A stretch of DNA of 64,000 nucleotides from Hyaloraphidium curvatum SAG 235-1 (GCA_025558095.1 JAIVFI010000004.1:682001-746000), one strand, 5' to 3'. Positions 4,177 to 61,051 are shown, counted from the stretch's first letter. Numbers and translations are program-made. Notes: generated by a model not told the origin, from the letters alone.

Positions 4177-5412
4177 ATGGCGCCCAAACCCGCGCTGTTC
4201 GCCACCGCGGCGTGCGTGGCACTTGCCGTGCTCGCCCTGGCGTCGCCGAGGAGCGAGGCGCCGGCGGGGTCGGCCGAGCCCCGCGCGGTCGAGGTCGATA
4301 TGGCAAAGTGCCCGGCGTGCCCCGCCGCACCGCCGTGCCCCGCTCCTCAGGCGCCGCCACCGCTGCCGCCCGCGCCCTCTCAGCAGGCGGCGGGCGAATG
4401 CGCGCCGCACCCGGCGGTGCTCGCCGCCTTCCGCCGCGTGGACGACTGGAGCCGCGACGGCTCGGGCTGCCCGACGGACGCGCTGTGGGACGCGCTGGCT
4501 GCCGCGGGCCCGCCCCCGAAGGCGCTTGTCAACGTGGGCTGCAACAGGGGATACAATCTTGCGGGTTGGCTGGGCCGGTACGCCCCCGCGGCAGGGATCG
4601 TCGACGGTCGATCCTGGCTGCGGGCGCTGGAGGCCGTCAAGAACACATCCGGCCCCGTGCTAAAGGAGGGCCAATGCGGCGCATGCGGGAACTGCAGGGA
4701 AAAATACGGGGCCCGCGACCCAGCACCCGCCGAGCCGCCCCGGATCGCGTGCATGGACGCCGCCGTTGCCAACGTCGGCCTGGTCAACCGCATCCTCGCC
4801 CACCTCGGCCTCGCCGAGCCGCGACAGGGCGTGCCCCGGATCGACGTCTCGCTCCTGGCCTTTGCCGGCCCCGGTCCGGCGAACCGTACCCTCTACTTTC
4901 CCCGCGTGCCAGAGGGCGACCCGCGTGGCATACTCGGCGCCGATCCCGGCAACGACTCAGACCCCGTTCCCGTATCCACGGTCGACGAGTGGCACGCACG
5001 TGCCTCGGCAGCAGGGTTTCCAGGTGAGATAGACCTCCTGGAGGTGGATGCCGAGGGGCTGGACCCGGCCATCCTCCGCGGCGCCGCAGGCACGCTGTCC
5101 TCCGGGGCCGTACGGGCGGTGCTATTCGAGCACAACACGATGGGACAATGGACCAACGAGCCGCTCAAGCGGACGGTGGACTTGCTCGAGGGGACGGGGA
5201 TGGCATGCTACCTCCTCTCCAAAAGGAAGAGGGTCTGGAGAATCGGGGGTTGCGACTGGATCGAGGATCTGGGGAAAAAGCGCAAGTGGGCAAACGTCAT
5301 GTGCTTTAGGCGCGGGGATCCGTGGCACGAGATGGTCGAGGGGTGGAATGTGACGCCCGAGAAGGCAGAACACGTCGTCGGGAAGCAGACCAAGCAGGAA
5401 TCGGCCACTTAG
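4177..5412 (+). CDS. FkbM-family (Methyltransf_21-like) SAM methyltransferase with N-terminal signal/TM anchor, single exon
   Basis: Hydrophobic N-terminus and Pro-rich stem, motif I VNVGCNRGY, IDLLEVDAEGLDPAILRGA, VLFEH. Confidence 0.75.
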   Translation: MAPKPALFATAACVALAVLALASPRSEAPAGSAEPRAVEVDMAKCPACPAAPPCPAPQAPPPLPPAPSQQAAGECAPHPAVLAAFRRVDDWSRDGSGCPTDALWDALAAAGPPPKALVNVGCNRGYNLAGWLGRYAPAAGIVDGRSWLRALEAVKNTSGPVLKEGQCGACGNCREKYGARDPAPAEPPRIACMDAAVANVGLVNRILAHLGLAEPRQGVPRIDVSLLAFAGPGPANRTLYFPRVPEGDPRGILGADPGNDSDPVPVSTVDEWHARASAAGFPGEIDLLEVDAEGLDPAILRGAAGTLSSGAVRAVLFEHNTMGQWTNEPLKRTVDLLEGTGMACYLLSKRKRVWRIGGCDWIEDLGKKRKWANVMCFRRGDPWHEMVEGWNVTPEKAEHVVGKQTKQESAT

Positions 5413-5675
5413 GCCAGTAACGACGCTGATGGCAGCTCTTTGGGGCTCAAGGGGTTCAATTTCGGCCGGCTTTGTGCGAGAGGGAAGATCCAGGTTGGGC
5501 CGAAGTCGCCGACTTAGACAGCCGCGGGGTCAGGGTGTAGATCCGTCGCACAGTTAGAGGCTCTGACTGTGTTGCTGAAAAGATGGAATCACGGGCGGTT
5601 GGATGGATTGCCTGCCGGGAACGCCTCCGGTTGCGGCGATGACGACAAGGCAGCTCCCCCCAAAGCTCAAACGTA

Positions 5676-6273
5676 ATGTCGCGCTCACCCGCCCCGGAGG
5701 CCCAGTCCGAGACGGACCGTGAGCTCGCCGCCTTCTGGGCGCGCCACCTCGCCGCCGCCGCGTCTGCCCCACCCACTCGCCTCCCGCCGTCGCGCATCAA
5801 GCGCGTCATGCGGACCGACGATGACGTCCGCCCGCTCGCCATATCCTCTGAGGCGCCCGCGGTCCTCGCGCGCGCGGCGGAGGTGTTTGTCGAGGAGATG
5901 GCCCTGCGGTCGTGGCTGCACGCCAAGGCCATGAAGCGGGGGGTGGTGCTCAAGGAGGACGTGTCGGCGGGCGCGAGGCACGAGATGTTCGACTTTCTCA
6001 TCGATATCCGTGGGTTGCGCGTGGGTCTGCTGGTCCACAAGGGGTTTTGACGCGTCGGACGGGCAGTGCCGCGGGAGACGGACTTCCTCGCCAAGGTGGG
6101 CTCGCCTCCCCGTGTCGCTAGCATTCGGCACTCACCGAGAGGCACGTGTCCAGAACGAGGAGCCGCAGCCAGAAGCGCATGTGAGGGCGGCCGATTATTA
6201 TCAGCAGTATGCGCGCGAGAGGGCCATCGAGGCCGATGAGGCGGAGGCAGCAGCGGGCGGAAACGAAGGGTGA
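5676..6273 (+). CDS. Histone-fold protein, NF-YC/Hap5-like, multi-exon
   Basis: LPPSRIKRVMRTDDDV..ISSEAPAVLARAAEVFVEEM..RSW..FDFLIDI is the NF-YC histone-fold signature; introns near 6010-6066 and 6096-6141. Confidence 0.85.
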
Positions 6274-6736
6274 CCGCTCGCGGTCGTGACTCGATGACTT
6301 CATGCCTTCCGCGAGAGTGTCTCGTGGAGCGCAAAGATTGCTCTTTGCCGCTGGCAGCGCCGCCGACGCTCTGCGCATTGCACGGATCGGAATGCAGCAA
6401 CCTCCGCCCGGCCTGTCGCGGCACTGCCACGTGCCTTCGTGTCGACACTCATTTCGGTGCACACTCGCATATGGGCGCATCCTGCGTGAAGGAACCCGTT
6501 GGACGGCACCGGATGCAACACATTGCTGGCGATGTCATTATGGGAGAGACTGGACCCTTGGACATAAATGATGCGTGTGGACTTCTTTGCAGATTATCAT
6601 GGCAGTGACTTCTTGGCGGTGCTTCCTATTATTGGTGCTCCGCGGCAAAAGCTAGCAAGGGAGGCAGCGGCGGGGACGCGGATAGGACTTCCGCCGCGCA
6701 GTTAGAGTCAATGTCCGTTCGCGCACCAATGTAGAG

Positions 6737-9133
6737 TCACAGCGGTGCAGCTAAAGCTGCCCGCCAAAACCTATCCCGCATCAGCAGATGCGCGACAACC
6801 CCGCGCTCATCACCGAGCTTCAGGGGGTGCAGTCCGTCGTGCTTTGCTGGATTGTACAGCTCGAAATAGCGGGTGGCGTTGTTCCTGTAGTCCCGTTTGT
6901 ACGAGCTTGCCACTGAAACAGGAAGCCTGCGACTCTCAGGGACCGAGCAAAGTGCAGCTGTCGGCAGGGCAACTTCGAAGTGCAATCCCAGGCTCGCCGA
7001 CTTCTCCAGCGCATCCACAAAGGTCTTTACTAACGGCTTGCAGCTTTCCTGCAAGTTTAAGAACAGGAAGTCCCACGGAGCCCCGGCGTAGAGCATGGAG
7101 TTGCTCAGAAGAGTTTGGGTATCGCTGGTGTTGTTTGGACCTTTTGGTGAGGTTGAGCAAGCCGAACCTGGCCGAAAGAGATCCGGGACTTGTTGGACGT
7201 ACATGTGCGCGAGGTTCCTGTTCACTTCGGTCCACCACCAGAGACGCCTCATGCGCGGCGATCCAATCGGGGCCAGGGCCGAGAGGTTGAAGAAACTGTC
7301 GCAATGCCCGATGCAGTGCTGCTTCTCGTCAAGAGCTTTCAACAAACGTCCAAAGTCCAAGACCATATCATCATGCTGCCATAAGTAGTGTTTTGAAGAA
7401 GGGGAAAAGAAAGGGTGAGCCAGGTCGCTTGCCATGGTTACATGCGCGCGATCGCCCTGCCGTGCATGCGCAAAGCTGTGTGAGCACTCGATGTTTGCTG
7501 TCATGGCCCTGCAGGTTCGTGTCTGTCCAAATTCCCACTGCACGTGGTAAAAGACGTTGCCGCCGAATGCACTGGCGTATAGCGCGTTCCACGGTGCAAC
7601 CGCCTGCAGATGTCCGTGATTGATGTGGACACTGGCCGCAACATCCGGCATGAACGGCGCTGATTGGGGCGAAGCCACCCAGTCGGCGGGTCGGCAGATA
7701 TCGTCTGGTGGCACATAACCAACAGCGGAAAGCGCACGGATCCAAGACTGTACGCCTATCACGTCGCTCTTCTCGAGCACCTTGCGTTCGTAAAGCCGGA
7801 TGTAGATATCTTCAAGCATTTGGAGTGGGTTTCCAAACCCGTCGCCTCGCTTCAGCAAAGCAGCTTGCTCGTCCGACCATTCGCCCAGGTATTCAATCAG
7901 CCTCGCGCTCAAGTCGTAGAGATCCGATTCGGCCCGCATATCTCCCACAAAGTCGTGTGCGGTTCGATCGTGGCGGACCCACGGCTTTGCGAATCCAACG
8001 ACAAAGCCGCAGACATGGAAGATGGCCTGGGCAATGTACGAGCGCCAGATGTCAGAAACCCGACCGTGGACCGAGATGGGTAGGTAGAGGGCCCAGAAAG
8101 CGATCGAGGTGTGCAAAGTGGCTTGAGCGTTGTAGGGCGCGTAGAAGGGGCGGGAGACGTAGGCGACATTGATCGACGAGGCAAAGCTGGCTTTTGGCGA
8201 CGGCTGGGATAGTCGATACATTGCATCCACGTCAGGATCTCCATCGGCTGCAGATTGCACCACAGCGATGCGCTGCGCCGCCTGCGGGGACAATCTGACC
8301 AGCTCCGGCTCCATGTTGGCTCGACGGCTCGAGATGTGTTCAGGCGGAAAGCCACGAGGCCAAAGCCGACTCGATGGTCCCAGCACGGCATACGGGTTCA
8401 ATGACCGAGGCGCAGTCGAAGCCTTGGTTCCGTCGCGGACACGCAAACCAAACAGGCCGTCCAGGTTCGTATGGGGTACTCCCGGATGGGTTGCCTTGGC
8501 GTACGCCGCCCACAGGTCAGGCACCGTCAGAACGTTGTCGTCGTCAAAGTCCCAAATCAAGCAAGCCCCGAGCTCAATTGCCTTCAGGTACCCCAAGTTC
8601 TTCCTCGAAAAACTGTTGTAGGGCATCAGTGCCGCAAAATCCACGAATGCGCCCATCTTGCCCGGGTCGTCCTGGTCCTTGTCACTGTAGAACAGCACGC
8701 CCGCACCGCCGGAAACGTTGTACGAGGAGGGCCCTTTGCGATCGCCAATGACCACGAGAGAAGAGTTCGGAGCTGCCGCGACGAATGAACGAGCAGCCTC
8801 TGCCACGTCGAAGATGGTTGTCAACACTCCGAAGAGGGGTCTTTTAAAGCCGAGAGGCAGTCGGCACACGTCAGGTCTCGGACGCCCGCCTTCCGAAGAC
8901 GATGCCACGTCAAGAATTGGACGTGCGCCTTTCGAAGACGACGCCACTCGGTTGTCCTTGCCCCATGTCCTGCTTACGGCGCCCGCGAAAGAAACCCGGC
9001 GCGAAGCGCTCGTTCCCGAAAGCGCATCCGGCGGCGACATCCTCCCTTCCTTTCCAAAGGCATTGAAGAGCGCCGCAGCAGAAGCGAGGAGGAGCGCGAG
9101 TGTGAGTCCTAGAACCCCATATGAAGACTGCAT
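6737..9133 (-). CDS. STELLO-like (DUF288) Golgi glycosyltransferase, single exon
   Basis: N-terminal TM segment; VVIGDRKGP, PYNSFSRKNLGYL, IWDFDDDN, WPRGFP, DGDPDVDAMYRL, GRVSDIWRSY; C-terminal domain with QHDD, EVALPT and HPLK. Confidence 0.85.
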   Translation of the reverse strand: MQSSYGVLGLTLALLLASAAALFNAFGKEGRMSPPDALSGTSASRRVSFAGAVSRTWGKDNRVASSSKGARPILDVASSSEGGRPRPDVCRLPLGFKRPLFGVLTTIFDVAEAARSFVAAAPNSSLVVIGDRKGPSSYNVSGGAGVLFYSDKDQDDPGKMGAFVDFAALMPYNSFSRKNLGYLKAIELGACLIWDFDDDNVLTVPDLWAAYAKATHPGVPHTNLDGLFGLRVRDGTKASTAPRSLNPYAVLGPSSRLWPRGFPPEHISSRRANMEPELVRLSPQAAQRIAVVQSAADGDPDVDAMYRLSQPSPKASFASSINVAYVSRPFYAPYNAQATLHTSIAFWALYLPISVHGRVSDIWRSYIAQAIFHVCGFVVGFAKPWVRHDRTAHDFVGDMRAESDLYDLSARLIEYLGEWSDEQAALLKRGDGFGNPLQMLEDIYIRLYERKVLEKSDVIGVQSWIRALSAVGYVPPDDICRPADWVASPQSAPFMPDVAASVHINHGHLQAVAPWNALYASAFGGNVFYHVQWEFGQTRTCRAMTANIECSHSFAHARQGDRAHVTMASDLAHPFFSPSSKHYLWQHDDMVLDFGRLLKALDEKQHCIGHCDSFFNLSALAPIGSPRMRRLWWWTEVNRNLAHMYVQQVPDLFRPGSACSTSPKGPNNTSDTQTLLSNSMLYAGAPWDFLFLNLQESCKPLVKTFVDALEKSASLGLHFEVALPTAALCSVPESRRLPVSVASSYKRDYRNNATRYFELYNPAKHDGLHPLKLGDERGVVAHLLMRDRFWRAALAAPL

Positions 9134-9374
9134 CGATGTTCTCGGCGGCCCGAGAGTGCAGCCGGAACGTGAACAAGGCCACCACTCATTCGCGATCGCA
9201 AAGATGACAACGCGCCGAAACGGGGCGGCCCGGCCCGGGGCTACGATGTCGATGCTCGTGTTCCGCAGCAGAGGCGATGTCCCCTTCATCCTCAAATTAC
9301 ACCATAAGCACTTGCAGGGAGATAGAATGCATCACAACTGTGTCATCACAAGTTTACAGGGTATGAAAGAGGTA

Positions 9375-12300
9375 TTAACGCGCGGCTTCCATCAGCAGCT
9401 TCTCCGCCTGTGCTGCATGTTGCGTCACAATGCTCAACGCTCCCATCTCCTTCTTCTCCTGGATAGCCACCAGCGACTCCAATGCGCCTTTGACGAGCTG
9501 CTCTCTCCGTTCGTACTGGGCCTTGAGCCGGCGGTACTTGGCCCTCAGGTCGTTCAGCTGCATTCAAACGGTTAGGATTCCCTCAAGCGCGGCTCAGCAC
9601 CGAGCAGACCCACCTCGCCGTCCAATCTCCGCCACGTTTCTCGCTCGCTCTCGAGCTGCGCCCGCATCTCCGTCAGCTGCTCCTTGGCCTCCTGCAGCTG
9701 CCTGTTTGTCGCTTCCGACGCCTCAACAGTCGAAGACCGCAGCTTCGCCGACAGGAGCTGCTGCTCCCGCTCCAGCTCGTGCACGCGACGGGACAGACCC
9801 TCTGCCCTGTCCTCCAGGGCTTCGTTCTCGCGTTGCTGCGCCTTGGCGTTCTCAATCAGCTCGGACACGCGGGCCTTGGCCCCTTGGCGCTCCAGCCGTA
9901 GGCGCTCCTCCACGTCCTGGAGCTGCGCTTCGAGCTGGTTCGCACGGTCCTCGGAGTCCCGAAGCTGGTGCTTGAGCTGCCGCGCCTGAGCGTTCGTGTC
10001 CTGCAGACCGCCGAGGTTGCGTTCGGCTGCCTCCGCGCGAGCCTCGGCCGCCTTGACGCGCTGGTCCAGCATCCGAATCTGAGCCGAGCTCGAGCTGCGG
10101 GCGTTGAGAAGCGAGTCGATCTCGGACTGCAACGTCGCGAGCTGGTCCTTGAAGGATGCCATGTGCGACTGGCACTGCGATTGGCACAAATGCCTCGGGC
10201 GCCACGACGAGCCTACCTGCGTCCGTTCCAGGTCGAAGCTCGTCTGATTGTACAGGTCAGACAGCTGCTGCTGCTTTCCGTTGGCCCTGTGCGCCATGTT
10301 CTCGAGGTCGTCGATGTTTGTAAATTGCGACTGCAGGTTGGACTCGAGGTTCTGAATCTTTCGCCGGCAGGCTTGGACCGCATCCATCAACCCGCTTTGC
10401 ACAGAGCCGACCCAGTTCTCGAGATCGACGAGGCCCCCGATAATGTCGGGCTGACCGCCCTGGTCGAGGGCGTGTCCCGCACCCGTCATCTGCAAGATGT
10501 CGCCCAGACGGCGTTCCACCCTGTTCAGGAGGTCGTGCTGGCTATCGACCTGCGATTGGAGATCCTCGACCGTGGCGGACGTGCTCTTGCTGCGCTGCTT
10601 CTCGTTCTTGAGCTGCGATTCCAGATGACGGGAGGAATCCTGCCACGATCGAATGTCCTGCAGAGGACACGGCAAGTAAGAGGTAATTCCCAACGATGCC
10701 GGCAGTCAGACCGGACCTGCTTCTGGGTCTCGCACACTGTCCGCAGTTCCTCCACAGTCGAACTGAGCTCCGCAATGCGATCCGTCTGCTGGTTCAGCTC
10801 CCGAACGTTGGCGTCGTTGGCCGACCCGAGCGTCTCCAACCTGGCCTCGTAAGAGGCCAGAGTGGCCCGTAGCTCCTTGACGGTTGCGGTGGCGTGACCG
10901 AGCTCCGCAGCCAGGCGCTCGTTCTCCTTCGACACCGACGTGCTCTCGCGCGTATGCCGATGCGCAACGTCGTCGAGCTGCTGCTGAAGTCCATCGGCTT
11001 CGGCACGAAGTCGGACTATCTCCAGCCGCGACTGCTCGCGCTGCTCGCCCAGTGCCTCCAAGTCTTCCTGGTACTGCCGAATGCGAGAGTCGTGCTGCTG
11101 GCGCAGGTTCGCCAGCGAGGTCTGCAGCGCGCCGATCTCGTCCTGAAGCTGCTGGTTCTTCGATGCAAGGTGTTTTCGCTCGCGCTCGCCGGCGGTAAGC
11201 GTCTCCTGGTACTTGCGCTCGGATTCGTCCGAAAGCTGGTGGTTTTCGGCGAGCTCATGCTTGAGGTTTGCCGCGGCAGCATCGAGTTCGTCGATTTGGT
11301 CCTTGAGCGAGTTGTTCTCCTCCTCGAGGAGCCGGAGCTGATTGTCGGCTGCCGAGAGCTTCTGCCGGTAACCCTGGATTTCCTGTGAAGGAGTGGTCAA
11401 GCGCGGTCCAAAGAACGGTTGAAGAAAAACGCACCTCAAGCATCCGCTTCGCCTGGCTCGCGGCATCCGCATCGGACCTCATCATTGTGGCCTTCATCTC
11501 GCCGACCTGATTGATCAAACCCTGCAGGTCCTCCTGCATAGCGAGCTCTCTGGCATCCGATTGTGCAAGGACCTTTAGAAAAATCGTGAGGCGAGAAAGG
11601 CTCAAGGCGACAGCGAGCGCGCCTCACGCACCTCCTCGTACTTGCTCTTCCAGACGGCCTCCCTGTCTTCGACCTCCATCCGCCACAAGGAATCGTCCTT
11701 CTCGTACAGCATCCGCATCCGCCTGTTGACCGTCTTCTCCTCCTTGAGCTCCTTGGCGAACTTGAGGGCGACCCGCACGGCGCCGTAGAGCACATTCCGG
11801 AGGTCCAGCATGGTCTGCTGCTCCGGATCTGCGGCTGCGAAGGAAGAGCGCCGGGAATTGTACTCCTCGTCCGAGTCGAAGTCCGTTCCGAAGCGCTCCT
11901 GCAGGTCGTTGATCATGTTCTGAAGGCTGGCGACGTCCTGTTGCAATAGTACGAACTTGAGCCACGAGCACCGCCAACGATCAATGTGAGACCAACCCGC
12001 TCAAAGTGTTCGTCCGCGAACTTGTCCAGCTCCGCGGTATCCGCGGCATCCAAGTCCACGTCCCGCTGGCCCGGCGTCCGCGGCTTGTCTGACGGCGGCG
12101 TGCGAACCTCTGCCCTGTTCAACGGAGTCGTCGCTGCTTGCCGCGGCGGCGCCTCCTTGGCGCGCGCGAGTTGCTCCCGCAGGGAAGCAAGCAAAGACTC
12201 CTTGGCCCGCAACTCGGCCTCGAGCTCCCGCACGCGCTCGGAGGACCGCCGGACGGCCTCCTCGGTGGCGTCCAGGCGCTCCGAAACCTCAGAGCCGCGG

Positions 12301-14180
12301 GCTGCAGACGCCGCGGCAGCATCCAGCTCCCCTTGAGCCCTGTGGAGCTCGGCCTCCGAGTCCTCGGCAGCGGAGCGGAATTTCTCCACGTCGACACGCA
12401 TCCTCCCGACCTCCGACTCGGCCCTCTCCGCCGCCAAGCGCAAAGCGTTCGCCTCCTCCGCTGCTTCTTTCCTCGTTCTCTCCAGCTCCGCATTGAGCCT
12501 GGCAACCTCGGCCTCGAGCCTCGCCGCCGCCTCCCCATCCTTCATCTCCATCCCCGCCAGCTCGACAACCTGCCTCGTCAGCTCGTCCACCTGGCTTCTG
12601 AACGCCTGCAGCTCCCTCGCGTCGCGGTCTCCGTCGGCCTTGGCCTTGGCGAGCTCGGCGCGGGCCGCGGCGAGCTGCCCGTGGAGCCCGTCGGCCTCGC
12701 GGCGGAGCTGCTCCGAGCCGGCGCCGGCCTCGCGGGCGCGCGACTCGGCCTCCTCGACCTCGGCGACGAGAGATTGGATGCGGAACTCGTAGTGCGAGCG
12801 GAGGCGCTCCTTCTCGTCGCGGTACTGCGCGACGATGTCCTCCAGTTCTGCGAGCCGGGCTGCGGCGTCGGGGTCGGCGGGCGGGTGAGATTCCAGGTCC
12901 GCCATGCGCTGCAGTCAGGCCGTGCGCCGATCAGTGACGAGACCCGCAACCAATTTGCTGCGAGGCCCACGTCGCGCAGTTCCCTGACTTCCCGCTCCCT
13001 CTCGCCGATCTCCCGCAGCAGCCGCTCGCGCTCCCCGTCCATCTGTCCCGCCGAGTCCCTGAGTATTCTCAGCTCCTCCGTTGCCCTGCGGGCCGCAGCT
13101 TCGGCCTCCTCGACCCGGGAGAGAGCAGCACGGGCCGCGATCTGGGCGTCCTGCGCCGCGCGGTCGGCTTCGCGGGCCGCCCGCTCCGCGTCCTCGGCCC
13201 GTCTGGCCTCCTCGTCCGCCCGCCGGGCCTCTTCCTCGGCCCGGTTAGCTTCCTCCTCCGCCCTCCGTGCCTCGTCTTCAGCACGCGCTGCAGCGTCGTC
13301 CGCCCGGCGCGCCTCCTCGTCTGCCCTCCGCACTTCCTCCTCGACCCGCTGTACGGCCTCGTCGAGCGCCCTCTCGAGGTCCTCGACGGCACGCAACGCC
13401 AAGCCCTCCCTGTTCTCTGCCTCTTCCGCCCGCTCGGCGGCCCGCGAATAGCGTTCCATCTCGGCCCTCAGAGCGCGGGCCTCGGCCTCGGCCGTCTCCC
13501 GCTCGGCGCGGTCCGCATTGCGGGACGCCAGCGCGGCGTCCCTCGCGTCCTCCGCGTCGCGGACGGCGCGGTCGGCCCGGTCGAGGTCCGCGATCAGGGA
13601 GTCGCGGTCCAGGGTCAGCTGGTGGATGGTGGTCTTGTGCTCGGCATTCTGCGACGGAAATGCGCCCCGTCAGCCCCCAGCACGCAGAGCTGTGCAGCGT
13701 AGCGCACCTCCTTGATCGCCTCGTGCAGGGTTCCGGGGGAGTTGCGCTCGAGCTTCTCCTCGAGGTAGTAGATTTTGAGCTTCAGCGAGAAGTTCTCCTT
13801 CTTCAGGTCGTCAATGAGCTGCACAAGCGGCGTCAGATGGCTCTAGCAATGCACTGCAGAGTGCTGGTGGCCCCTGCCTTCTCGGTCTGCTTCAGGCCGA
13901 AGCCGGCCTGGGGTTGGGCCCCCTGCGCCGGCGACACCTGCGTCTCTGGGCGGCCCCTGCCTGCGTCCGCGGGGCCCAGCGACAGCCTGTGGCGCGGGCC
14001 GGAGGCGGCGGCGTGCGCGGCGGGCTGAGACGCGGCGGCCTTGCCGCGCGGCGTCGGGGAGCCCGTGGCGGACGCGGGCGCGGCGGTGCGCGGCGGCGCG
14101 GGCGTGAAGAACGCGTTGTCGCCGCCGTCGTCGCCGTCGTCCGACAGCAGGTCGACCGACACGTCGCCCGGGAACGCCAT
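9375..14180 (-). CDS. Long coiled-coil gamma-tubulin-complex receptor with centrosomin motif 1 (Mto1/ApsB/centrosomin-like), multi-exon; 3' end approximate
   Basis: CM1 motif LKQTEK|LIDDLKKENFSLKLKIYYLEEKL, followed by about 1300 aa of heptad-rich sequence in successive minus-strand exons. Confidence 0.75.
13170..13400 (-). repeat. Coding 21-bp (7-aa) imperfect tandem repeat EEEARRA/DEEARRA within the CM1 protein
   Basis: Translation ...VEEEVRRADEEARRADDAAARAEDEARRAEEEANRAEEEARRADEEARRAED... Confidence 0.7.
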
Positions 14181-19704: not shown

Positions 19705-19757
19705 CTTTTTCAGTGGGAAGGAGTGCTTCGTAGCGTGAAATGGGATCTTGGAGCTCT

Positions 19758-22526: not shown

Positions 22527-22540
22527 ATTAGAGCTACACA

Positions 22541-47251: not shown

Positions 47252-47396
47252 GGACCTCCATGACCTCCTCGAGGTCACATGAGGCTACCTCGTGGGACCT
47301 CATTTTTCAATGTTGTTGTCCTCATATATTGAGGTCACCTCAAAATGACCTTGGTAACTGAGGTCACTTCGAGGTGACCTCAGCCACTCCTGCTAG
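47252..47396. repeat. Palindrome-rich element with repeated GAGGTCAC/GTGACCTC units and a terminal hairpin followed by CTAG
   Basis: gaggtcac at 47271, 47331 and 47360; hairpin tgaggtcac-ttcgag-gtgacctca at 47359-47382; CTAG at 47393-47396. Confidence 0.6.
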
Positions 47397-47670
47397 GGAG
47401 TGCCCAGAAGCTCAAGGACAATGACAGGCTGCACTTCTGGAGGATGTGTTACATGACCTTTGGTCACATTGCACCGTCGCTGATCCGGGTGGAGAAGCAC
47501 CGGAGGGACGTCCAGAAGGTGCTCTGCTCTACCCACGACCTGGAGGTGGAAACAGGCAGGCATCAAGGAGCAGCAGAGGATGTGCAAACATGACCCTGAG
47601 CACATTGGAGACGAACAACACTTTCTGTTCCACTGTTCAGCAACTCGGATACATCATCAAAGGCCCTATC
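47397..47670 (+). mobile_element. Degenerate 3' fragment of a non-LTR retrotransposon ORF2 (C-terminal zinc-knuckle region)
   Basis: Translates as ...KHRRDVQKVLCSTHDLEVETGRH, then after a frameshift QRMCKHDPEHIGDEQHFLFHC, matching the LINE pattern HxLxVExGR...RxCxxC...DExHFLxxC. Confidence 0.65.
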
Positions 47671-51564: not shown

Positions 51565-51642
51565 CGGAACCCGTTACATTGGGCGGCTTTGGCCACACTA
51601 GCCGGCTCCTGCGGAACCGGTTACATTTGGCGGTTTCGGCCA
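51565..51642. repeat. 31-bp imperfect direct repeat straddling the stop codon of the FkbM-like gene
   Basis: 51565-51595 versus 51612-51642, four mismatches; both read WPKPPNVTGS on the minus strand. Confidence 0.85.
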
Positions 51643-52660: not shown

Positions 52661-53529
52661 CTCCGCCGGCGCCGCGCGTCCGCGGTCGTGCCTCCACGCA
52701 GAATGCCGTCGCGCCGGACCGTCGATGGCCGGGCGGCGGCGCGGAGAAGACGCGTGGTTTTCGGTTTGGCGGGTGCGTCTTCGTTCGGCAACTGCCGAGC
52801 ACGATACTGCTATAGTACTGCGGTACTGCCTGACGAGCAAATGAGCACGGTACATGTCAGACCCAGTCCGACGCGGAAGCATGCTGTGAGCTTCCGGTTA
52901 GCGCATCAGATGCAGCTCCGAGCACGTCTTCGTGCGGATTGGCACGTTCAGGACTGGATCTGGAGACGCTCAAAGGCGGCTGTGGGAAGCTCTGGAGATC
53001 CACGGTCGAATCCGCGGCCGATGATGCCCCTTTCCGGATTGTCTATGTAATCGCCGCCATCCTGCCAATGCCAGCGAGAAGGCAATATGAAATGGCAGCG
53101 AGAAGGCAATGTAAAGTGTTCGCTGTAGATGCACGGCGCACGTCGTGCTTCGTACGACGGGATTGGCATGGGGTGTCCACCGCATCCTGCCCCTGCCCGA
53201 ATCACAATCGTGTCCATATGAACAATCTGGTCTTGACACACGCTCCGATGTCCTGTTCGTGATGAGATCAGGGGTTGTCAGCGACCGATCCAGCGTGCGC
53301 GGGTCCCGTGCGCCCATTCAGGGTCCTTGCCCCGCACCCTCTTCCAAACGGCCGCATTCCAGCGATTGCCGTTACCTGCTCGTTCTTGCGTCCTTGCAAG
53401 ACCGCAGCCCTTTGGCACCACGTGCCGGCATTGCTGTCGCGGACCCCTCTCGCCCCTCCACGCTTCGAGACACATCCGCAGCCTCCTGCCCCCCACGGCG
53501 TTTAGAGAGCCCGCGAAAGACGCGCCGCA

Positions 53530-55165
53530 ATGTCCTCAAACATCAAACCCGAGCAGTTGAAGGGGTTCGAGGGGAGCTTCGACAACCCCGGCCTCATGCT
53601 CCCGTGCAACTTCTCGATCCTGCCCAAGGACGACGCCGCGGTCCGCAAGGCCGCCGAGGCCGCCGTTAACGACTCGTGCCTCGTCAAGGTCGGCTCGCGC
53701 GTGGTCATCAACAACCCCTGCAACCTCCCGACCTGGCCGTGGCTTCCCGACGGGCACCTGACCGTGATGAGGTCCCCGGGAGACGCGGCGGACAAGTTCA
53801 TCATCTACTGGAGCGAGTGGTGAGCCCATTCCGCTTGCCAAAGGGGTTAAGGGCGCTGATTACGGGCTGCAGGGAGAACTACCGCACCGTCGGGGACCTG
53901 CCCTGGCCTGAAACGCACGCGGGGCCGAATCCCGGTGCCATCGTTTGGGGCGGGCGCAACGGGATCCTGGGGAGGCACGACAGGTTCGGCCGGCGGAAGC
54001 TGCCCACCGGATCGCGGCTAATTGCGGATTCCCCTTTCTCAGCGGCGGTGCTTGGCTCCAAGGCGTCGTGCGCCGGACGCCAGCCGACAGAAGATACCGC
54101 ACCTGGCGGCTCATTGGAACATACCACGCGGAGGACCGGTACACAATGGAGAAGGACGAGTGCTGGAAGAGCATCGGCGTCTGGTACGTCTTGAGGCCGT
54201 TCCGCCCGGGTTGCGCGCTCACTGCCGCAGCTACTCGATCGACGACGGCCTGCCCGCATCCTGGATTGAGGGCGGCGTCATCATCAGCGCAAACGAGGAG
54301 AAGGTTGTACTTTCGCGACGCGGTAATTTTGCCGGTCTGACGATTGCGCTGCAGCCCAAGGAGATGTGCTTTGGCGGCGTCGGCGACCACTGCTACGTGT
54401 GGGTGCCACGGCGAGCCAACCAGACTGGCCATCCGGCTCACGCTGCCCCTCGCCCAGTTACGACTGGATCAACAAGCGCCACGTGATCTTCTACACCGAC
54501 CACATGGGCATCCACATGGCCATCTCGTACGACATCCTCGCCCGCGCGGGATTCTGGCTCAAGTACCACAACGGCGGCTTCACCGAGTTCGGCATCCGGG
54601 GCAAGTCCACGCGGATCGAGGCGCTGGCCGGGCTGGACGACTGGAAGGGCATGGCGGCGGGATCCAACCCGAGCGTGATCTGGTGAGCCTGATCCTGTCC
54701 CGCAACTCCCGGAGCCTCGAGTGACCGTCGTCATGGGCGGACAGGTCCACCTTCCTCAACCGCTGGGTGATGGTCTGGGGCACCTGGCAGGGCCGCATCT
54801 GCCTCTCCACCGCCGGGCCGGACATGGTCAACTGGGAGAAGCCGCGCATCATCATCGACAGCCAGGAGGGGAACAAGGCTTGGTACCCCAACCTCATCGG
54901 CGCAGAGAACGGGAGCGAGTCCATCGGCGCCGAGTGCAGGCTCTACTACGCCGATTTCAGGAAGGACAACTCGCGGGCCTTCTGCTACGTGCCCATCACC
55001 GTGGGTCGACTTCCGGCCGCCCCGTCGAAGCGATGGCTGACATCCGCACAGTTCACCAAGTGCCCCAAGACCGATCCCAAGCTGACCCAGGCCCCCCTGT
55101 ACGGCGTCACCTCGGGCCTGGTGAACACCGCCTGGCCCCGCGACCAGCCCAAGCCCGCCGCTTGA
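53530..55165 (+). CDS. Uncharacterised Trp/Tyr/Gly-rich protein, possibly a glycoside-hydrolase-like beta-propeller, multi-exon
   Basis: Intron-bounded exons with YHAED, CWKSIG, GGVGDH, WLKYHNGGF, NPSVIW, WVMVWGTW, WYPNLIG and LYYADF beta-strand-like repeats; family not pinned down. Confidence 0.5.
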
Positions 55166-55354
55166 GCGGGAAGATCGGTATGGCCGCCTGCATAGATCGA
55201 ATGAATATTGCACATATCCTGCACCAAAAGGGCGAATAAAGCTCAATCTATTACGCGGAATGCGGATCCTTTTCGTGGAAGATTGCCGATTCAGATTCGG
55301 GCCCACTTGGGCAGCTAGGACGCGCTCGTGATTCCCTCGTCCCAGTGGAAAACA

Positions 55355-56734
55355 ATGAAGGACTATGCGGCGACGGTGCCGCGACATTGGATCCTGCGCG
55401 CGCTGCTCATTGCCGCAGCGGTGTCGGCGCTGCCGTACTACTGGTCGCTCCGCGGCCCCGGGCTGGGCCCCGGGACGGACGTCGGCGCGGCTCGCACGGC
55501 GCCGCCTGCGGCCGCGCCGTCCCAAACCCCGTGCGCGCCCTCCCCGGACGTGTGCCGCCCGTGGACCCGCCGCCCGGAGCTCCGCCCGTCCAACTCGAGC
55601 TGGCACCGCTGCCTGCACGCCCGCGGCGGCCCGGCAAAGACGCGCTGCTACTTCCGCAACGTGTGCGTCGGCACCGACGGCAGGCTGCTGTACTATACGG
55701 GGGGAAAGGAGATGCCGGAGTGGAACGACCCGCTGCTGTACCTGGTGAGCAGGGCCGAGGAGCCCTACTTCAACCGCACGCGGCTCAACGTGAGCGTGAT
55801 CAACGAGGCCCTGCCCGACGTGCCGTTTTTCCCGTCGGCGACGGTCTACTTCGAGTCCTTCCAGCCCGAGAACTTTGGCCACGCGCTGGACGACAACTTC
55901 TTCCCCGCGTGGCGGCTGCTGAGCATGTTCGGCATGGGCTGGGACCGCGACGTGCTGTACCTCGCCAAGGACTCGCGGCCGGACCTGTGCACCTCGCGGT
56001 TCGAGCTCAACAGGAGGCATTGCGAGCACCTGCAGGATTTCGCGCGGTTCTTCGGCGGGAGGCCGGCCTACGCGGTGCGGAACCCGCCCGCGGAGTGGAC
56101 CTCCGGGGGCGCGCCGGGAGGGGGGAAGCGGTTCTGCGCGCGGCACCTGGTCGCGGGGTTCTCGGGGTGGTCCATGAACCACGACGAGGACAGCCGGCAC
56201 GACCCGTTCGTGGACATGGTCATGTGCCGCGCGGGGGTCGACCCGCGGGGGCCGCTGCCGCGCGAGCACCGCGTGGCCTTCTTCAACAAGACCTCGCGCC
56301 GCGTGACGGTCAACACCGCGGAGCTCGCCGACGCGGTCCGCAGGACGTTCGGGGTGCCGGTGGACGTGCTGGACGTGGCCTCGATGGGCTTCGTCGAGCA
56401 GATCCGCGCCATGCAGAACTACACCCTCGCCATCGCGCCCACGGGGGGCATCGGCTTCTCGACCATGTTTTTGCCGTACGGCGCCTCGTCGCTGTACATC
56501 GGCAACCTCGAGATCTGGCTGTGGACGTCGCGGCTCCGCGCGCGGGACCACTTCTACCTCCCGCAGGACGAGGAGCTGCTTTACAACCGGACCGAGTACA
56601 CTGAGAAGGTGGCGCAGTACGGGGCGGATAACCCCAAGGCGAGGGGGGTCAGGCGCAACTGCGACAACAGGGTGGACGTGGGGAGGTTCCTGGGGGCCGT
56701 GCGGCAGGCGCTGGACGGGGTGGATTGGGGGTGA
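55355..56734 (+). CDS. GT61/DUF563-like glycosyltransferase, single exon
   Basis: TM anchor; CYFRNVC, NFGHALDD.FFP, RR.TVN..EL, MGFVEQIRAM....LAIAPTGG.GF..MFLP.GA. Confidence 0.75.
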   Translation: MKDYAATVPRHWILRALLIAAAVSALPYYWSLRGPGLGPGTDVGAARTAPPAAAPSQTPCAPSPDVCRPWTRRPELRPSNSSWHRCLHARGGPAKTRCYFRNVCVGTDGRLLYYTGGKEMPEWNDPLLYLVSRAEEPYFNRTRLNVSVINEALPDVPFFPSATVYFESFQPENFGHALDDNFFPAWRLLSMFGMGWDRDVLYLAKDSRPDLCTSRFELNRRHCEHLQDFARFFGGRPAYAVRNPPAEWTSGGAPGGGKRFCARHLVAGFSGWSMNHDEDSRHDPFVDMVMCRAGVDPRGPLPREHRVAFFNKTSRRVTVNTAELADAVRRTFGVPVDVLDVASMGFVEQIRAMQNYTLAIAPTGGIGFSTMFLPYGASSLYIGNLEIWLWTSRLRARDHFYLPQDEELLYNRTEYTEKVAQYGADNPKARGVRRNCDNRVDVGRFLGAVRQALDGVDWG

Positions 56735-56855: not shown

Positions 56856-57857
56856 ATGCACACGTCCAGTGCGGGCGCCGCGCTGCCCGGTGCCGCGCTG
56901 CTGGCGGCGCTGCTGCTCCTCTTTGCTTTCCTCGGCGGCGGATCCGGCGGCGGCGACCCCGGCGCGCCGCCGCCCGCGGTCCGCGCCGCGCGCATCGCGC
57001 CGCCGTCGTTCCCCGCCGCCGCGTGCGCCGCCGCCGCCTCCGCGCCCCTCCGCTTCCCGCGCGCACAGCGCCTCGCGTACGCCTCCAATTTCTCCTCCGT
57101 GAAGGGCTGGATGAACCCCGCCGTCGCGCACCTCGCCGCCGTGCTCTCCGACGCCCAGTCCCGCGCGGGGATCTGCGGCGCCGCGGGCGAGATCGGCGTG
57201 CACCACGGCAAGTTCTCCATTGCGCTCGCGCACGCCCTCCGAGCAGGGGAGCGGAGCGTGGCCGTGGACGTGTTCGAGAACCAGGAATTGAACGTGGACG
57301 GGTCGGGGAATGGGGACCGTGCGGTGTTCGAGGGCAACCTGAGGCGCTTCGGGGTCGAGCCGGGGGAGGACGTGCGGATGATCGCCGGGAGCAGCGACGA
57401 GGTGGTGCCCGCGCAGCTGGTGGAGGCGGCGGGGGGCAGCATGTTCCGGCTCTTCTCGGTGGACGGCGGACATACGGCGGAGCTCGCCGAGAATGATTTG
57501 CGGCTGGCGGCGGCGGTCTGCGTGGACGGGTGCGTCGTCTTCCTCGACGACTTTTTGGCCCCGGAGTGGCCCGGCGTCACCGAAGGCCTCGTCTCCTACC
57601 TCCGCACCGCCACCCCCTCCCTCGTCCCCTTCCTCGCCTACACCAACAAGCTCCTCCTCACCACCCCGTCGTTCCACGCGCGCTGGACCGACGCCGTGGC
57701 TTCGCACGCGCACTTTGGACCGCGGGCCAAGAAGAAGCCGCGGAGGGTCGCGCTGGGGGGGACGGCGTACCTGCTGGGGCCGCCGGGTTTCTACGAGGGG
57801 GAGGGGGGGGAGAAAGAGGCGTGGATCAAGTACGTGGAGGGGTCTGGGGGCGAATGA
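56856..57857 (+). CDS. Class I SAM methyltransferase (Methyltransf_24) with TM anchor, single exon
   Basis: VKGWM, GEIGVHHGK, AVDVFE, FRLFSVDGGHT, VFLDDF...WPGV. Confidence 0.85.
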   Translation: MHTSSAGAALPGAALLAALLLLFAFLGGGSGGGDPGAPPPAVRAARIAPPSFPAAACAAAASAPLRFPRAQRLAYASNFSSVKGWMNPAVAHLAAVLSDAQSRAGICGAAGEIGVHHGKFSIALAHALRAGERSVAVDVFENQELNVDGSGNGDRAVFEGNLRRFGVEPGEDVRMIAGSSDEVVPAQLVEAAGGSMFRLFSVDGGHTAELAENDLRLAAAVCVDGCVVFLDDFLAPEWPGVTEGLVSYLRTATPSLVPFLAYTNKLLLTTPSFHARWTDAVASHAHFGPRAKKKPRRVALGGTAYLLGPPGFYEGEGGEKEAWIKYVEGSGGE

Positions 57858-58292: not shown

Positions 58293-59975
58293 ATGAGGCG
58301 ACGGGCGTGCGGTGCCGGTGCAGCGCTGCCCGCGGCGTGGGCGTTCCTCTTTCTCCTTCTGGCGGGCTCCGTCCTCGCCGCCTCCGCGGCCGATGCCCCG
58401 GCCGCCCCCCGGGCCGGCGATGTATTCGACGACGCGGCGTTCGGCGAGTCGCAGCTGGCCGATCTCTTTGCCGCGCTGCCCGCGGCCGACGAACCGCCGC
58501 CGCTCCCGCCGCGCCGGCTCTTTTCCGCCGCCGACGCGCGGCTGCGGTTCCTCGGCCGCTGGGACTTTTCTGCCGGCGAGGCGCTGACCGGCTGGAGCCG
58601 CGGCCGCCTCAGGCTGCGCGTCGCGGGGACCGCCGCGGTGTCGCTGCACTGCCGCCTCTCGGCCTTCGATGCAAACGGCACGTGGACCGACAGGCCGCTG
58701 CTGGCCATGGTCCGCGCCGTGCCGCTGCGGCTGCCCGCCGCGTTCAACTCCTCGTGGGGCACGATCGCGCCCGCCTGCGCGCCCTCGCATTCGCAGCCGG
58801 GAGGCGCACCCGCCGCGCCGCTGGCGACCGGGCTGGACCCCCGCGCAGCGTACGACCTCGACGTCGTCTTCCTGTTCGCCGGCGAGGTCACGGTACCCGG
58901 CCAACGCCCCCTCGCCGTGGAAGCCGTGGGCCTGGACGCCTCCCTGCCCTCGGACCTCCTCGCCGTCCCCTGGCAGCCGGTGATCGAGTTCGTGGGGGAC
59001 AGCATCACCGCCGGCCTTTCGCTCGCCGCGGGCCCCGACGGCACCGTGCAGCTCGCCTCGTACGCCGACGAGGCCGCCCGCATCCTCGGCGCGCAGGCGG
59101 CGGTGGTCGCGCTGCCTGGCATCGGCCTGGTGGCGCGGCAGCCGCCCATGCGGGACGCCTACTTCCGCGGCGGCCTGGCGCCCGATTCGCCGCGCCACGA
59201 TTTCGCGGCGCAGGGGTACCGCCCCCGCGCCGTGGTGGTCAACCTGGGCGTGAACGACAGGTGGCAGGGCGTCGCCCCCGCCGAGTTTGCCGCGGCGTAC
59301 CGGACCTTGCTCTCCGAGATGATGCGCACGTACGGCCGCGACAACGGCACCACGTACGCGGTGCTGGTGCCCTTTGGCCGGTGGCACAACGACTCGCGGG
59401 AGGTGCTACCCGTGTACGACGCCGACGTCTGGCGCAACATCAGCGAGGGCTGGCCCCGCAGGCCGAAAGTGATTGCGCTCGACAGCGGGGGTTGGTTGAC
59501 GCCCTTCAATGCGCCGAGGCTGCTGGTCGACGGGGTGCATCCCAACCCGGACGGGCAGTTGGTGTTTGGCGCGAGGGTCGCGGGGGAGCTGAGGAGGCTG
59601 CTGGCGCTGGAGGACCGGGATCCGCCCCGTACGAGCACGCGCACGAGGAGTCGGACGAGGACGAGGACGGCGACCACCAGCACGACGCACAAGTTCACCA
59701 GCAGCACCACGCGCACGCAATCCACGTCGACCACGCGCACCGACAGGGCGAGGGCGTCGGGCAGGGGAAGCTCCTCGCGGACGTCGAAGCAGACCACCGG
59801 GCGCCGCGCGACGGTGACCACGAAACGGGGGTCGACGGGCCGCCGTCGCACCGGAAGGACATCGCGGGGCCGGGAGACGACCGCGCGGCGCAACTCGACG
59901 CGGGGACGCACGGCGCGCACGTTGCGCAGGGCGGGGAGCAGCTCCGCGAGGGCGCGGTCGACGAGCAGGCGTTGA
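58293..59975 (+). CDS. Secreted SGNH/GDSL hydrolase (CE2-like carbohydrate esterase) with a Thr/Arg/Ser-rich tail, single exon
   Basis: Block I EFVGDSITAG, block III VNLGVND, block V DGVHP; N-terminal RFLGRW beta-domain typical of CE2-like enzymes. Confidence 0.82.
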   Translation: MRRRACGAGAALPAAWAFLFLLLAGSVLAASAADAPAAPRAGDVFDDAAFGESQLADLFAALPAADEPPPLPPRRLFSAADARLRFLGRWDFSAGEALTGWSRGRLRLRVAGTAAVSLHCRLSAFDANGTWTDRPLLAMVRAVPLRLPAAFNSSWGTIAPACAPSHSQPGGAPAAPLATGLDPRAAYDLDVVFLFAGEVTVPGQRPLAVEAVGLDASLPSDLLAVPWQPVIEFVGDSITAGLSLAAGPDGTVQLASYADEAARILGAQAAVVALPGIGLVARQPPMRDAYFRGGLAPDSPRHDFAAQGYRPRAVVVNLGVNDRWQGVAPAEFAAAYRTLLSEMMRTYGRDNGTTYAVLVPFGRWHNDSREVLPVYDADVWRNISEGWPRRPKVIALDSGGWLTPFNAPRLLVDGVHPNPDGQLVFGARVAGELRRLLALEDRDPPRTSTRTRSRTRTRTATTSTTHKFTSSTTRTQSTSTTRTDRARASGRGSSSRTSKQTTGRRATVTTKRGSTGRRRTGRTSRGRETTARRNSTRGRTARTLRRAGSSSARARSTSRR

Positions 59976-60049
59976 GCCCCGCAAATGCCCCATTCAATAG
60001 ATGCGACCGCGACACGCCGCTCCTACCCCGGCTCCCCGCACCCGTCCCC

Positions 60050-61051
60050 CTACTCCGGATCCCCGCACCCTCCCCCCGCCACCAGCCCCAGCACCTCCCC
60101 CAGCAGCCTGCTCCCCTCCTTCGGGGTGGGATGCACTCTGTCCCTCAGCCCTGGCCTGCCCACGCGGAACACCCCCATCCCCAGCCCCGTCGCCCCCCTC
60201 GCCGCGCCGGCGTTGGCCCGCTCCACGAGCTCGTTGGTCCGCGGCCACCGCCACTTGAAGAGGGTCTCGTTGAGCCCGGTGTCGCCGACGGGGTTGGACG
60301 TCCGCCAGCCGGCCCACGCCAGCGGCCACCGGGCCTCTTCCGCCGCCTCCGCCGCCGCGCGCATCAGAGCGGTGGCGTTGCGCGCGTGCGCGGCCAGCCA
60401 TTCCCCGCGGCACGCGTCGCCCGCGGGCCCGTCCGAGTGCAGCAGCGCGTACGTGGCGGGGCGGCACTTCCACGCCTTGTAAAGGTCCCAGTAGAGCGCC
60501 TGCACGAGCAAGGCCGTCGGCGGGCGGGCCAGGACGGCGGGCAGCGCGCGGAAAAGCGGGACGAGGATGGCCCGCCACAGTTCGGCGGGGGAGGGGGGCT
60601 CCGGCGAGGAGGAACTGCCCAGCAGCGGGTTGGCCTCGCACAGGCTGGTCACGGCGGGGGAGGAGGCCAGCCGCAGGTGCACCAGCAGCACCGACACGTC
60701 CGCCGGGGCGTCGCGGCACAGGATAAAGTCGAACTCGGGCGCCAGCCCCGGCGCCAGCTCCCTTGCCACGGTCGAGTTTGCCAGCGTCCGCAGCGCGCCG
60801 CACTCTTCCTCGTCGGGGCGCGGGCCTTTGTTGCGCCAGCCGGGGGGCGCACACAGTTTGGCATTGCGCGCTTTGCAGCCGTCGGAGATGATGTAGCGGT
60901 CGACGCTATCGCCGAGCACGACGAGGCCGACGCCGCGGGGCGACCCGGTGCCCGACCCGCACAGCGCGAACGCCGCGGGGCGCAGCAGCAGGAACGCAGG
61001 GAGGAGCAGCAGCGCGCCCGCCGCCGCGAGGGCGCGCGGCATCCAGCTCAT
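60050..61051 (-). CDS. SGNH-fold PC-esterase/TBL-like polysaccharide O-acyl enzyme with TM anchor, single exon
   Basis: VVLGDSVDR near the N-terminus, WRTS, and C-terminal RDRVHP (GDS...DxxH). Confidence 0.62.
   Translation of the reverse strand: MSWMPRALAAAGALLLLPAFLLLRPAAFALCGSGTGSPRGVGLVVLGDSVDRYIISDGCKARNAKLCAPPGWRNKGPRPDEEECGALRTLANSTVARELAPGLAPEFDFILCRDAPADVSVLLVHLRLASSPAVTSLCEANPLLGSSSSPEPPSPAELWRAILVPLFRALPAVLARPPTALLVQALYWDLYKAWKCRPATYALLHSDGPAGDACRGEWLAAHARNATALMRAAAEAAEEARWPLAWAGWRTSNPVGDTGLNETLFKWRWPRTNELVERANAGAARGATGLGMGVFRVGRPGLRDRVHPTPKEGSRLLGEVLGLVAGGGCGDPE

Follow-up and report, generated by a model that had tools for sequence, protein, structure and literature searches.

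The stretch of DNA analyzed here (the window) comprises 64 kb of the genome of Hyaloraphidium curvatum, positions 682,001-746,000 of contig 4 (C4) in an assembly of 31.9 Mb and 55 contigs, and within it lies a real, expressed (three genes), lineage-specific island of secretory-pathway glycan enzymes that belong to many unrelated families. H. curvatum, a planktonic member of the Monoblepharidomycetes without a flagellum, is a chytrid that was formerly placed among the colorless green algae. The GT47 ORF of the window is 100% identical to an NCBI protein of this species, a match that rules out a picoalga with a glycan-rich outlier chromosome as the source. The window is gene-dense eukaryotic DNA with 65% GC; genes were called as stop-to-stop open reading frames (ORFs) with high third-position GC and scanned against Pfam, with the curated cut-off of each family as the pass mark, and for three spliced genes (the Methyltransf_22 gene, FkbM-like methyltransferase b, and an eight-exon gene at 53.0-55.2 kb) the family searches were made exon by exon. 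About 38 to 40 genes were counted, 14 of which (about 35%) are of glycan type; the original prediction for this DNA, which had spoken of a fungal-type genome with glycan genes making up over a third of the window, was borne out on both points, the genome being that of a chytrid. That prediction had also assigned all 14 genes to families and described all of them as N-terminally anchored or secreted. A Pfam scan, one of the checks it had proposed, placed nine of the 14 above cut-off (STELLO in part, GT47, GT92, GT61, DUF579/GXM, the two Methyltransf_24 genes, Methyltransf_22/FkbM, and GDSL), and a predicted GT-A fold supports a tenth (29810-30814) as a glycosyltransferase; the remaining four (two FkbM-like genes, a sulfotransferase, and a second SGNH protein) were called from motifs or sub-threshold matches. 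Hydropathy shows a Met followed by a hydrophobic segment in 13 of the 14, as would be expected of type-II Golgi enzymes or secreted proteins; in the Methyltransf_22 gene, neither the start codon nor any anchor was located.

Four of the five glycosyltransferase genes in the list were assigned by family profile. The first (6740-9133, minus strand) encodes an anchored STELLO-like or GT75-like protein of 798 amino acids (aa), the sole copy in the genome, which matches PF03385 at 50 bits (cut-off, 27.8) over profile positions 1-71 of 387 (1-107 in a six-frame search). A D-rich motif of the DxD type is visible in this protein, and its residues 153-438 match GT75 structures of nucleoside diphosphate (NDP)-pyranose mutases (7xpu) with an E value of 1.5e-13 (PMC9937993). 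The anchored, single-exon GT47 gene of the exostosin type (37257-38531, minus strand) matches PF03016 (E = 4e-35; 122 bits versus a cut-off of 33.4; positions 6-285 of 293) and has a hydrophobic segment after a Met at ORF residue 78, with a predicted type-II topology. In the NCBI model of this gene (473 aa; 36481-38531, minus strand), the N-terminal anchor and the beginning of the domain are missing, and a small downstream gene (36481-37225) is fused on; the uninterrupted ORF gives an anchored enzyme of 425 aa. The anchored GT92 protein (42221-43381, minus strand; PF01697, 61.5 bits versus a cut-off of 23) contains a D-x-D-E-F stretch of the DxD metal/nucleotide type, and a search of JGI metagenomes found no relatives of it. 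The GT61 protein (55355-56731, plus strand), also anchored, matches PF04577 at 33.9 bits against a cut-off of 27; among solved structures, it is matched by animal POMGNT2 (E = 3e-7) and EOGT (E = 0.024). At the right end of the window begins a gene for Anp1, a GT62 mannan-polymerase subunit (63614-64000, plus strand), which runs past the window end and whose continuation (L001:1-999) matches PF03452 with an E value of 6e-47.

The remaining glycosyltransferase (29810-30814, plus strand) had been called GT2-like, and neither the gene nor its close homologues has a Pfam match, including to the GT2 family (PF00535); one distant relative (E = 1.7e-4) carries PF00535. Homologues occur in at least five named chytrid genera, and in an alignment of 22 sequences of the family a DDD motif (residues 178-180) and a further DD motif are invariant. 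A search of the PDB by sequence with this gene found nothing, nor did such searches with two ORFs of the flanks. An AlphaFold model built from the same alignment reached a predicted local distance difference test (pLDDT) score of 84, and Foldseek matched it with probability 1.0 to KfiA, SpsA, B3GNT2, and EXTL2. By its modeled fold and its conserved DDD, the gene is thus predicted to encode a GT-A fold nucleotide-sugar glycosyltransferase, and the chytrid-wide family that it represents, which has no Pfam model, may be a glycosyltransferase family not described before.

Six methyltransferase genes are spread among the glycosyltransferase genes. The anchored FkbM-like methyltransferase a (4177-5409, plus strand) forms the left edge of the island and matches PF05050 at 19.4 bits (cut-off, 22.7) and TIGR01444 at 19.3 bits (E = 1e-3; cut-off, 37.7); the anchored FkbM-like methyltransferase b (51597-52660, minus strand) matches TIGR01444 at 13.8 bits (E = 0.06; same cut-off), and its K-L-D-I/E-G-A motif is interrupted by an intron of 55 nucleotides (nt) (51846-51900). 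Because both have FkbM-type motifs and neither reaches the cut-off of PF05050 or TIGR01444, we call them FkbM-like. The Methyltransf_22/FkbM gene (32399-33313, plus strand) has at least two exons, the second of which matches PF05050 (30.5 bits) and PF13383 (27.2 bits); a six-frame match that spans the intron scores 57 bits, and motifs are present in exon 1 as well. Two anchored Methyltransf_24 proteins exceed the PF13578 cut-off of 26.3 bits, copy a (41211-42116, plus strand) with 40.2 bits and copy b (56856-57854, plus strand), which begins 125 bp past the GT61 gene, with 50.8 bits. The sixth, an anchored methyltransferase of the DUF579/GXM type (43552-44442, minus strand), matches PF21729 at 37.1 bits (cut-off, 27.8) and keeps 24 columns that are invariant over 16 homologues, including G-x-G-x-D and H-D..R..E motifs; profile and family-invariant residues together place it by sequence in the DUF579/IRX15-GXM family.

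The other glycan-type genes of the list would act on sulfate or acyl groups. A putative Golgi sulfotransferase of the HS2ST/Sulfotransfer_2-like type (50247-51170, minus strand; anchored) was called from motifs and Atlas neighbors: it contains K-S-G-G-T-T and R-H-P..R..S motifs of the type that binds 3'-phosphoadenosine-5'-phosphosulfate (5'-phosphosulfate-binding and 3'-phosphate-binding motifs), and all 10 of its best Atlas neighbors are Sulfotransfer_2 or Gal-3-O-sulfotransferase clusters (0.95). It has no Pfam match even at an E value of 10, a six-frame search of the window found no Sulfotransfer_2 (PF03567) match, and a PDB search by sequence found nothing. An anchored SGNH/GDSL esterase or acyltransferase with an additional N-terminal domain (GDSL_2; 58293-59972, plus strand) matches PF13472 at 53.8 bits against a cut-off of 32.9 and shows catalytic blocks I, III, and V as GDS, G-x-N-D, and D-x-x-H; its tail, rich in Arg, Ser, and Thr, may be noncoding. 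Next to it, a possible second SGNH/PC-esterase-like protein (60053-61051, minus strand; anchored) is proposed from motifs only, a GDS near the N terminus and a D-R-V-H near the C terminus, with weak Atlas hints of NXPE4_C and PC-Esterase (0.89-0.93); it gave no match in hidden Markov model (HMM) searches or in a PDB search by sequence, and its single-sequence fold model was unusable (pLDDT, 38). Two further ORFs should be mentioned. One, possibly but not necessarily an island gene, encodes an anchored Cys-rich protein of no known family (46665-47279, plus strand; no Pfam or NCBIfam match). The other (39556-40992, plus strand) sits between the GT47 gene and Methyltransf_24 a; its first 200 codons look noncoding and are rich in Arg and Asp, its last 265 or so look protein-like without belonging to a known family, and it may be a further island gene with an upstream exon.

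Six-frame HMM searches over the whole assembly, which yielded the genome-wide family counts that the original prediction had also proposed as a check, showed that the density of these families in the window is exceptional. Genome-wide, the searches found 10 matches to GT47, 9 to GT92, 23 to GT61, 1 to STELLO, and 3 to the GT-A family; 12 to Methyltransf_24, 10 to Methyltransf_22, 19 to FkbM, and 2 to GXM; and 12 to GDSL_2 and 1 to Sulfotransfer_2, the last lying elsewhere in the genome. Ten of the 100 nonredundant matches fall within one 60-kb span of the window, the next densest spans hold 4, and when the matches were placed at random 20,000 times, the densest span usually held 3 and never more than 6. 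The Poisson probability for a given span is about 8e-15, a nominal value that is inflated by the choice of families after the window had been seen; even with that post hoc choice, chance is unlikely, because the excess is large and the whole genome was scanned. The genes are linked beyond chance, are of pathway type, and are not paralogues of one another, which is one mark of a glycan biosynthetic gene cluster. An all-against-all BLASTP comparison of the window proteins found no related pair, Methyltransf_24 a and b share no similarity at the sequence level, and across the whole island the only paralogy is that of the two bracketing FkbM-like copies described below. Tandem duplication was considered as the source of the cluster and rejected, as there are no paralogue pairs in the window and the copies elsewhere in the genome are 28-36% identical.

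Much of the cluster is concentrated in two near-contiguous sub-runs, from GT47 to GXM (37.2-44.5 kb) and from the sulfotransferase-like gene to the second SGNH gene (50.2-61.1 kb). Outside the window, the same families form 16 neighboring pairs within 20 kb, compared with about 5 expected, and glycosyltransferase-methyltransferase pairs recur on C2, C19, C21, and C1; since the members of these pairs are 28-36% identical to the island copies, they are not recent duplicates. This recurrent pairing suggests functional coupling. The pair loci are C2:486.7-488.0 kb, C2:619-629 kb, C21:438-442 kb, C19:59-67 kb, and C1:291-315 kb, and they combine GT61, GT92, or GT-A genes with FkbM, Methyltransf_22, or Methyltransf_24 genes.

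The island is about 70 kb long (about C4:686-756 kb), contains 15 to 19 glycan-type genes, and continues for about 10 kb beyond the window. To the right of the window lie the rest of the Anp1/GT62 gene, an anchored protein of no known family, a class-I methyltransferase (Methyltransf_11/23), an anchored protein of 943 aa with a weak GT14 "Branch" match, and a second copy of FkbM-like a. This copy (C4:754.3-755.6 kb; L001:8304-9553, minus strand) is inverted relative to the first (4135-5381, plus strand) and 87% identical to it in both protein and DNA over 1,250 bp; the two lie about 68 kb apart, exactly at the ends of the island, and their similarity ends at the gene borders. No glycan genes were found beyond them, the neighbors on the left being a retroelement, a kinase, MCM, and succinyl-CoA ligase and those on the right Tom20, PACRG, and an F-box protein. 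With the extension included, the island holds 15 to 19 genes for type-II-anchored Golgi or secretory enzymes of at least 13 unrelated families, interspersed with housekeeping genes: glycosyltransferases of the GT75/STELLO-like, chytrid GT-A, GT47, GT92, GT61, GT62 Anp1, and possibly GT14-like families; seven or eight S-adenosylmethionine-dependent methyltransferases (FkbM-like, Methyltransf_22, Methyltransf_24, DUF579, and Methyltransf_11/23); one sulfotransferase-like protein; and one or two SGNH proteins.

Two of the flanking genes deserve separate mention. The retroelement (C4:665.3-667.5 kb; L004:3312-5528), 15 kb to the left of the window, encodes an RVT_1 domain (E = 9e-32) and has inverted terminal repeats of about 700 bp that are 96% identical; a fragment of 258 bp inside the island (window positions 47401-47649) is 87% identical to part of these repeats. 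The PACRG (ParcG) gene on the right (C4:760.6-761.5 kb, minus strand; L002:4611-5483) was identified with an E value of 1.5e-41. PACRG normally accompanies axonemal microtubules, and we know of no flagellated stage in H. curvatum.

Comparison with relatives supports the view that the island is specific to this lineage. The main comparison was with a Logan assembly (SRR23967301; GC, 55%) whose proteins are 72-91% identical to those of H. curvatum and of which 44.7 kb of a 59-kb contig was compared by tblastx. The order on that contig is MCM, the MEKK4-like gene, Mob1, and a small gene (collinear with the left flank of the window, 1-4078, which holds the last three and gave Pfam matches), followed by coiled-coil genes (9459-13839, minus strand; called by Pfam), which are residents of the locus common to the relatives and not glycan genes, and then by the GT-A gene (30026-30817). 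The GT-A gene is followed directly by genes for a DNA methylase and a proteasome subunit, both of which lie at C4:759.5-762.4 kb in H. curvatum. Relative to this arrangement, H. curvatum has three extra segments: 4078-9459, with FkbM-like a, an NF-YB-like gene, and the STELLO-like gene; 13839-30026, with housekeeping genes only; and 30817 to about 77,480 (window coordinates), with all other glycan genes together with GDH, Vps5, GST, and Tom20. The other 14 glycan proteins have no match in the 44.7 kb compared, where the GT-A gene is the sole island gene. Essential genes lie within the extra segments, so the difference amounts to a rearrangement; a simple deletion would not explain it. A second relative (SRR26194948) agrees with the first, its proteasome, coiled-coil, and GT-A genes lying within 11 kb, and its DUF579 orthologue is located elsewhere, among unrelated genes. 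We also considered that the cluster might be conserved in other chytrids and rejected this, as the DUF579 neighborhoods of Fimicolochytrium, Powellomyces, and one relative contain no glycan genes. On the simplest reading of the synteny, the island, lineage-specific among the available relatives, probably came together in the Hyaloraphidium lineage at a site where one glycosyltransferase gene was already in place. The extension of the island past the window, the inverted paralogues that bracket it, and its absence from the syntenic locus of the relative had all been missed by the original prediction.

A 2018 sequencing run of H. curvatum proved to be RNA, as its contigs are spliced; these contigs show the presence of transcripts and give no expression levels. 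The run contains 91% of the sampled words of the region from 37.2 to 44.7 kb, and spliced RNA contigs cover the three genes examined (the sulfotransferase-like gene, FkbM-like b, and GT61); the predicted 55-nt intron of FkbM-like b is removed in its contig. Glycan genes have a third-position GC of 0.76-0.95 (0.66 for the STELLO-like gene), in line with the adjoining housekeeping genes. Two observations on gene structure may be added. Of the 14 glycan genes, 12 consist of one unbroken ORF, and the housekeeping neighbors (COG6, squalene epoxidase, GDH, SBNO, and GST) carry several short introns. In the middle of the island lies a gene with at least eight exons (53041-55200, plus strand), from which seven introns of 47-62 nt are spliced out and whose word depth (322) is the highest of the contigs compared; three of its exons were searched and gave no Pfam match.

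The genes had originally been described as a plant- or alga-like toolkit, distinct from the usual chitin, glucan, and mannan machinery of yeasts and molds. As far as family names go, this description holds for GT47, GT61, GT92, and DUF579 and in part for STELLO; it does not hold in a plant-specific sense, as DUF579 and GT-A genes occur in chytrids and the nearest structure to GT61 is POMGNT2, and the island also has the typical fungal GT62 Anp1. To judge from sequence relationships, the label is overstated and partly a product of Pfam family naming, and the island families appear to be old eukaryotic Golgi families retained by zoosporic fungi and not specifically a plant toolkit. The stronger claim that the polymers produced are of a true plant type (glucuronoxylan, pectic galactan, or arabinogalactan), with orthologous enzymes inherited or transferred from a green alga, can draw, beyond the Pfam names, on a GT47 protein whose best named non-self match is a plant protein (27% identity) and on green-algal proteins (Scenedesmus, Micractinium, and Chara) among the nearest named relatives of DUF579, which further include Chromera. 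We consider it very improbable: the identities of island proteins to plant or algal proteins are just 24-31%, the STELLO match covers less than one-fifth of the profile, codon use is native, and two genes have short introns of the host type. A full HMMER search with DUF579 returned only 164 representatives at E values of 1e-3 or lower, the nearest named of which also include a second H. curvatum copy, the chytrids Fimicolochytrium, Phlyctochytrium, Rhizophlyctis, and Powellomyces, and the amoeba Acrasis, and a tree of the family resolves no origin and sets the H. curvatum clade apart from the green-algal rows. An origin as foreign DNA, either an integrated giant virus or a bacterial polysaccharide locus, is likewise very improbable, even with Methyltransf_24 and FkbM being common in bacteria, introns being absent from most island genes, and a relative of Methyltransf_24 b (37% identity) being carried by an alphaproteobacterial metagenome-assembled genome. 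A scan of viral contigs with one Methyltransf_24 gene and one FkbM-like gene found no relatives, third-position GC equals that of host genes, the proteins have eukaryotic type-II anchors, two genes have spliceosomal introns, the DUF579 and GT-A genes have chytrid homologues, and essential host genes are interleaved with the glycan genes. What is published on other fungi fits with retention of old families: GT92 and GT14 are reported to be restricted to chytrids among fungi (PMC6572847), and GT47 has been reported in Mucoromycotina and Cryptococcus (PMC5872309). As to substrates, which bear on cooperation of the island enzymes, chytrids are predicted to make nearly all common nucleotide sugars, including UDP-Xyl, UDP-GlcA, UDP-GalA, UDP-Gal, GDP-Fuc, and UDP-Rha (PMC8092308).

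We think it rather probable that the island enzymes cooperate in the Golgi on a decorated surface glycan. They would work in the Golgi lumen, where side chains would be built and heavily O-methylated on a cell-surface glycan, either a wall or mucilage heteropolysaccharide or the outer chains of glycoproteins on a mannan core, which might in addition be sulfated and O-acylated or de-acylated; the GT62 gene hints at mannan or a glycoprotein outer chain as the scaffold. The original prediction, which had proposed a methylated, sulfated, and acetylated extracellular glycan made in the Golgi, is partly supported. Rearrangements would have brought the genes to a locus with one preexisting glycosyltransferase, and selection for co-inheritance or co-regulation would then have kept them together. 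That all of them serve one common product is a narrower claim, to which we give somewhat less than even chances. The main competitor is co-location without a common pathway, in which the enzymes would serve several glycans (N-glycan outer chains, O-glycans, glycolipids, and wall matrix) and one or a few large rearrangements would have joined genes that share only linkage or chromatin context. It would account for the mixing of glycan genes with housekeeping genes, for the essential genes that the three extra segments also contain, for the lack of a common promoter word, and for the many dispersed copies in the genome (e.g., 23 GT61 and 19 FkbM matches). We nevertheless regard it as somewhat unlikely, as a rearrangement of random genes would bring about one such gene and not 14 to 19, the two sub-runs are almost contiguous, and glycosyltransferase-methyltransferase adjacency arises independently at other loci.

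Several points weigh against cooperation of the island enzymes on a surface glycan. The glycan is predicted from genes, and we found no paper on the wall or the glycosyltransferases of H. curvatum. The calls for four enzymes lie below threshold; housekeeping genes make up about 60% of the gene content of the island, so that the cluster is a loose one; and a comparison of about 3,000 words in the upstream regions of 15 island genes found no significant shared promoter word (best P value, 8e-4). The rearrangement, for its part, may represent either a gain in H. curvatum or a loss from the relatives. To these is added the post hoc choice of families noted above. A still more ambitious version of the cooperative interpretation, that this is a self-assembled eukaryotic glycan gene cluster, the largest in a fungus, for a heavily O-methylated and sulfated surface heteroglycan that would be the first such fungal polymer, with the FkbM-like duplicates as relics or agents of the rearrangements, seems to us unlikely.

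Eukaryotes seldom have clusters of non-paralogous genes for glycan synthesis, and chytrid wall chemistry is almost unstudied. The island offers a compact list of candidates for Golgi sugar O-methylation, whose enzymes are poorly known in eukaryotes, as well as candidates for a possible fungal glycan sulfation and for an uncharacterized chytrid GT-A family, and the syntenic locus of the relative makes it a natural case of cluster assembly through rearrangement. Confirmation of the product would add to the kinds of polymer accepted for fungal walls and help to account for H. curvatum having long been mistaken for a colorless alga.

Among known systems, bacterial capsule and O-antigen loci likewise join unrelated glycosyltransferases with FkbM- and Methyltransf_24-type methyltransferases and acyl-modifying enzymes in one locus. 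They are operons with flippase, polymerase, and sugar-nucleotide genes, whereas no transporter or sugar-nucleotide genes are among the assignable ORFs of the island, whose genes are monocistronic, encode eukaryotic signal anchors, and in two cases have introns. The small outlier chromosome of the Mamiellales (Ostreococcus and Micromonas) is rich in glycosyltransferases and methyltransferases, has a low GC content and fast turnover, and is tied to virus resistance. It resembles the island as a eukaryotic compartment rich in surface-glycan glycosyltransferases and methyltransferases with lineage-specific content; in H. curvatum, however, we are dealing with an internal island of 70 kb with native GC on a contig of 957 kb, with no sign of hypervariability or of a link to parasites. 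The plant Golgi machinery for xylan, pectin, and arabinogalactan uses GT47 (IRX10/MUR3), GT61 (XAT/XAX), GT92 (GALS), DUF579 (GXM/AGM), TBL acetyltransferases, and STELLO. The same Pfam and CAZy families and a type-II topology are found in the island, where enzymes for chain building likewise occur together with enzymes for O-methylation and O-acyl handling, but the plant genes are dispersed, the protein identities are 24-31%, the STELLO match of the island is partial, and no TBL/PC-esterase HMM match was obtained; the island has in addition FkbM, Methyltransf_22, and Methyltransf_24 enzymes and an HS2ST-like sulfotransferase, none of which is known to take part in making these polymers in plants. 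In Aspergillus fumigatus, the galactosaminogalactan (GAG) genes are five contiguous, co-regulated genes with a known product and include a modifying esterase/deacetylase. Compared with this fungal exopolysaccharide cluster (PMC7229062), the island is larger and looser, with 15 to 19 genes over about 70 kb and housekeeping genes in between, has mostly Golgi type-II glycosyltransferases and methyltransferases among its enzymes, and is known from its genes alone. The likeness between the two lies in their composition: in both, linked non-paralogous fungal genes make (or, in the island, would make) and modify an extracellular glycan, and in both a modifying esterase or deacetylase is among them, in the island as a predicted SGNH enzyme.

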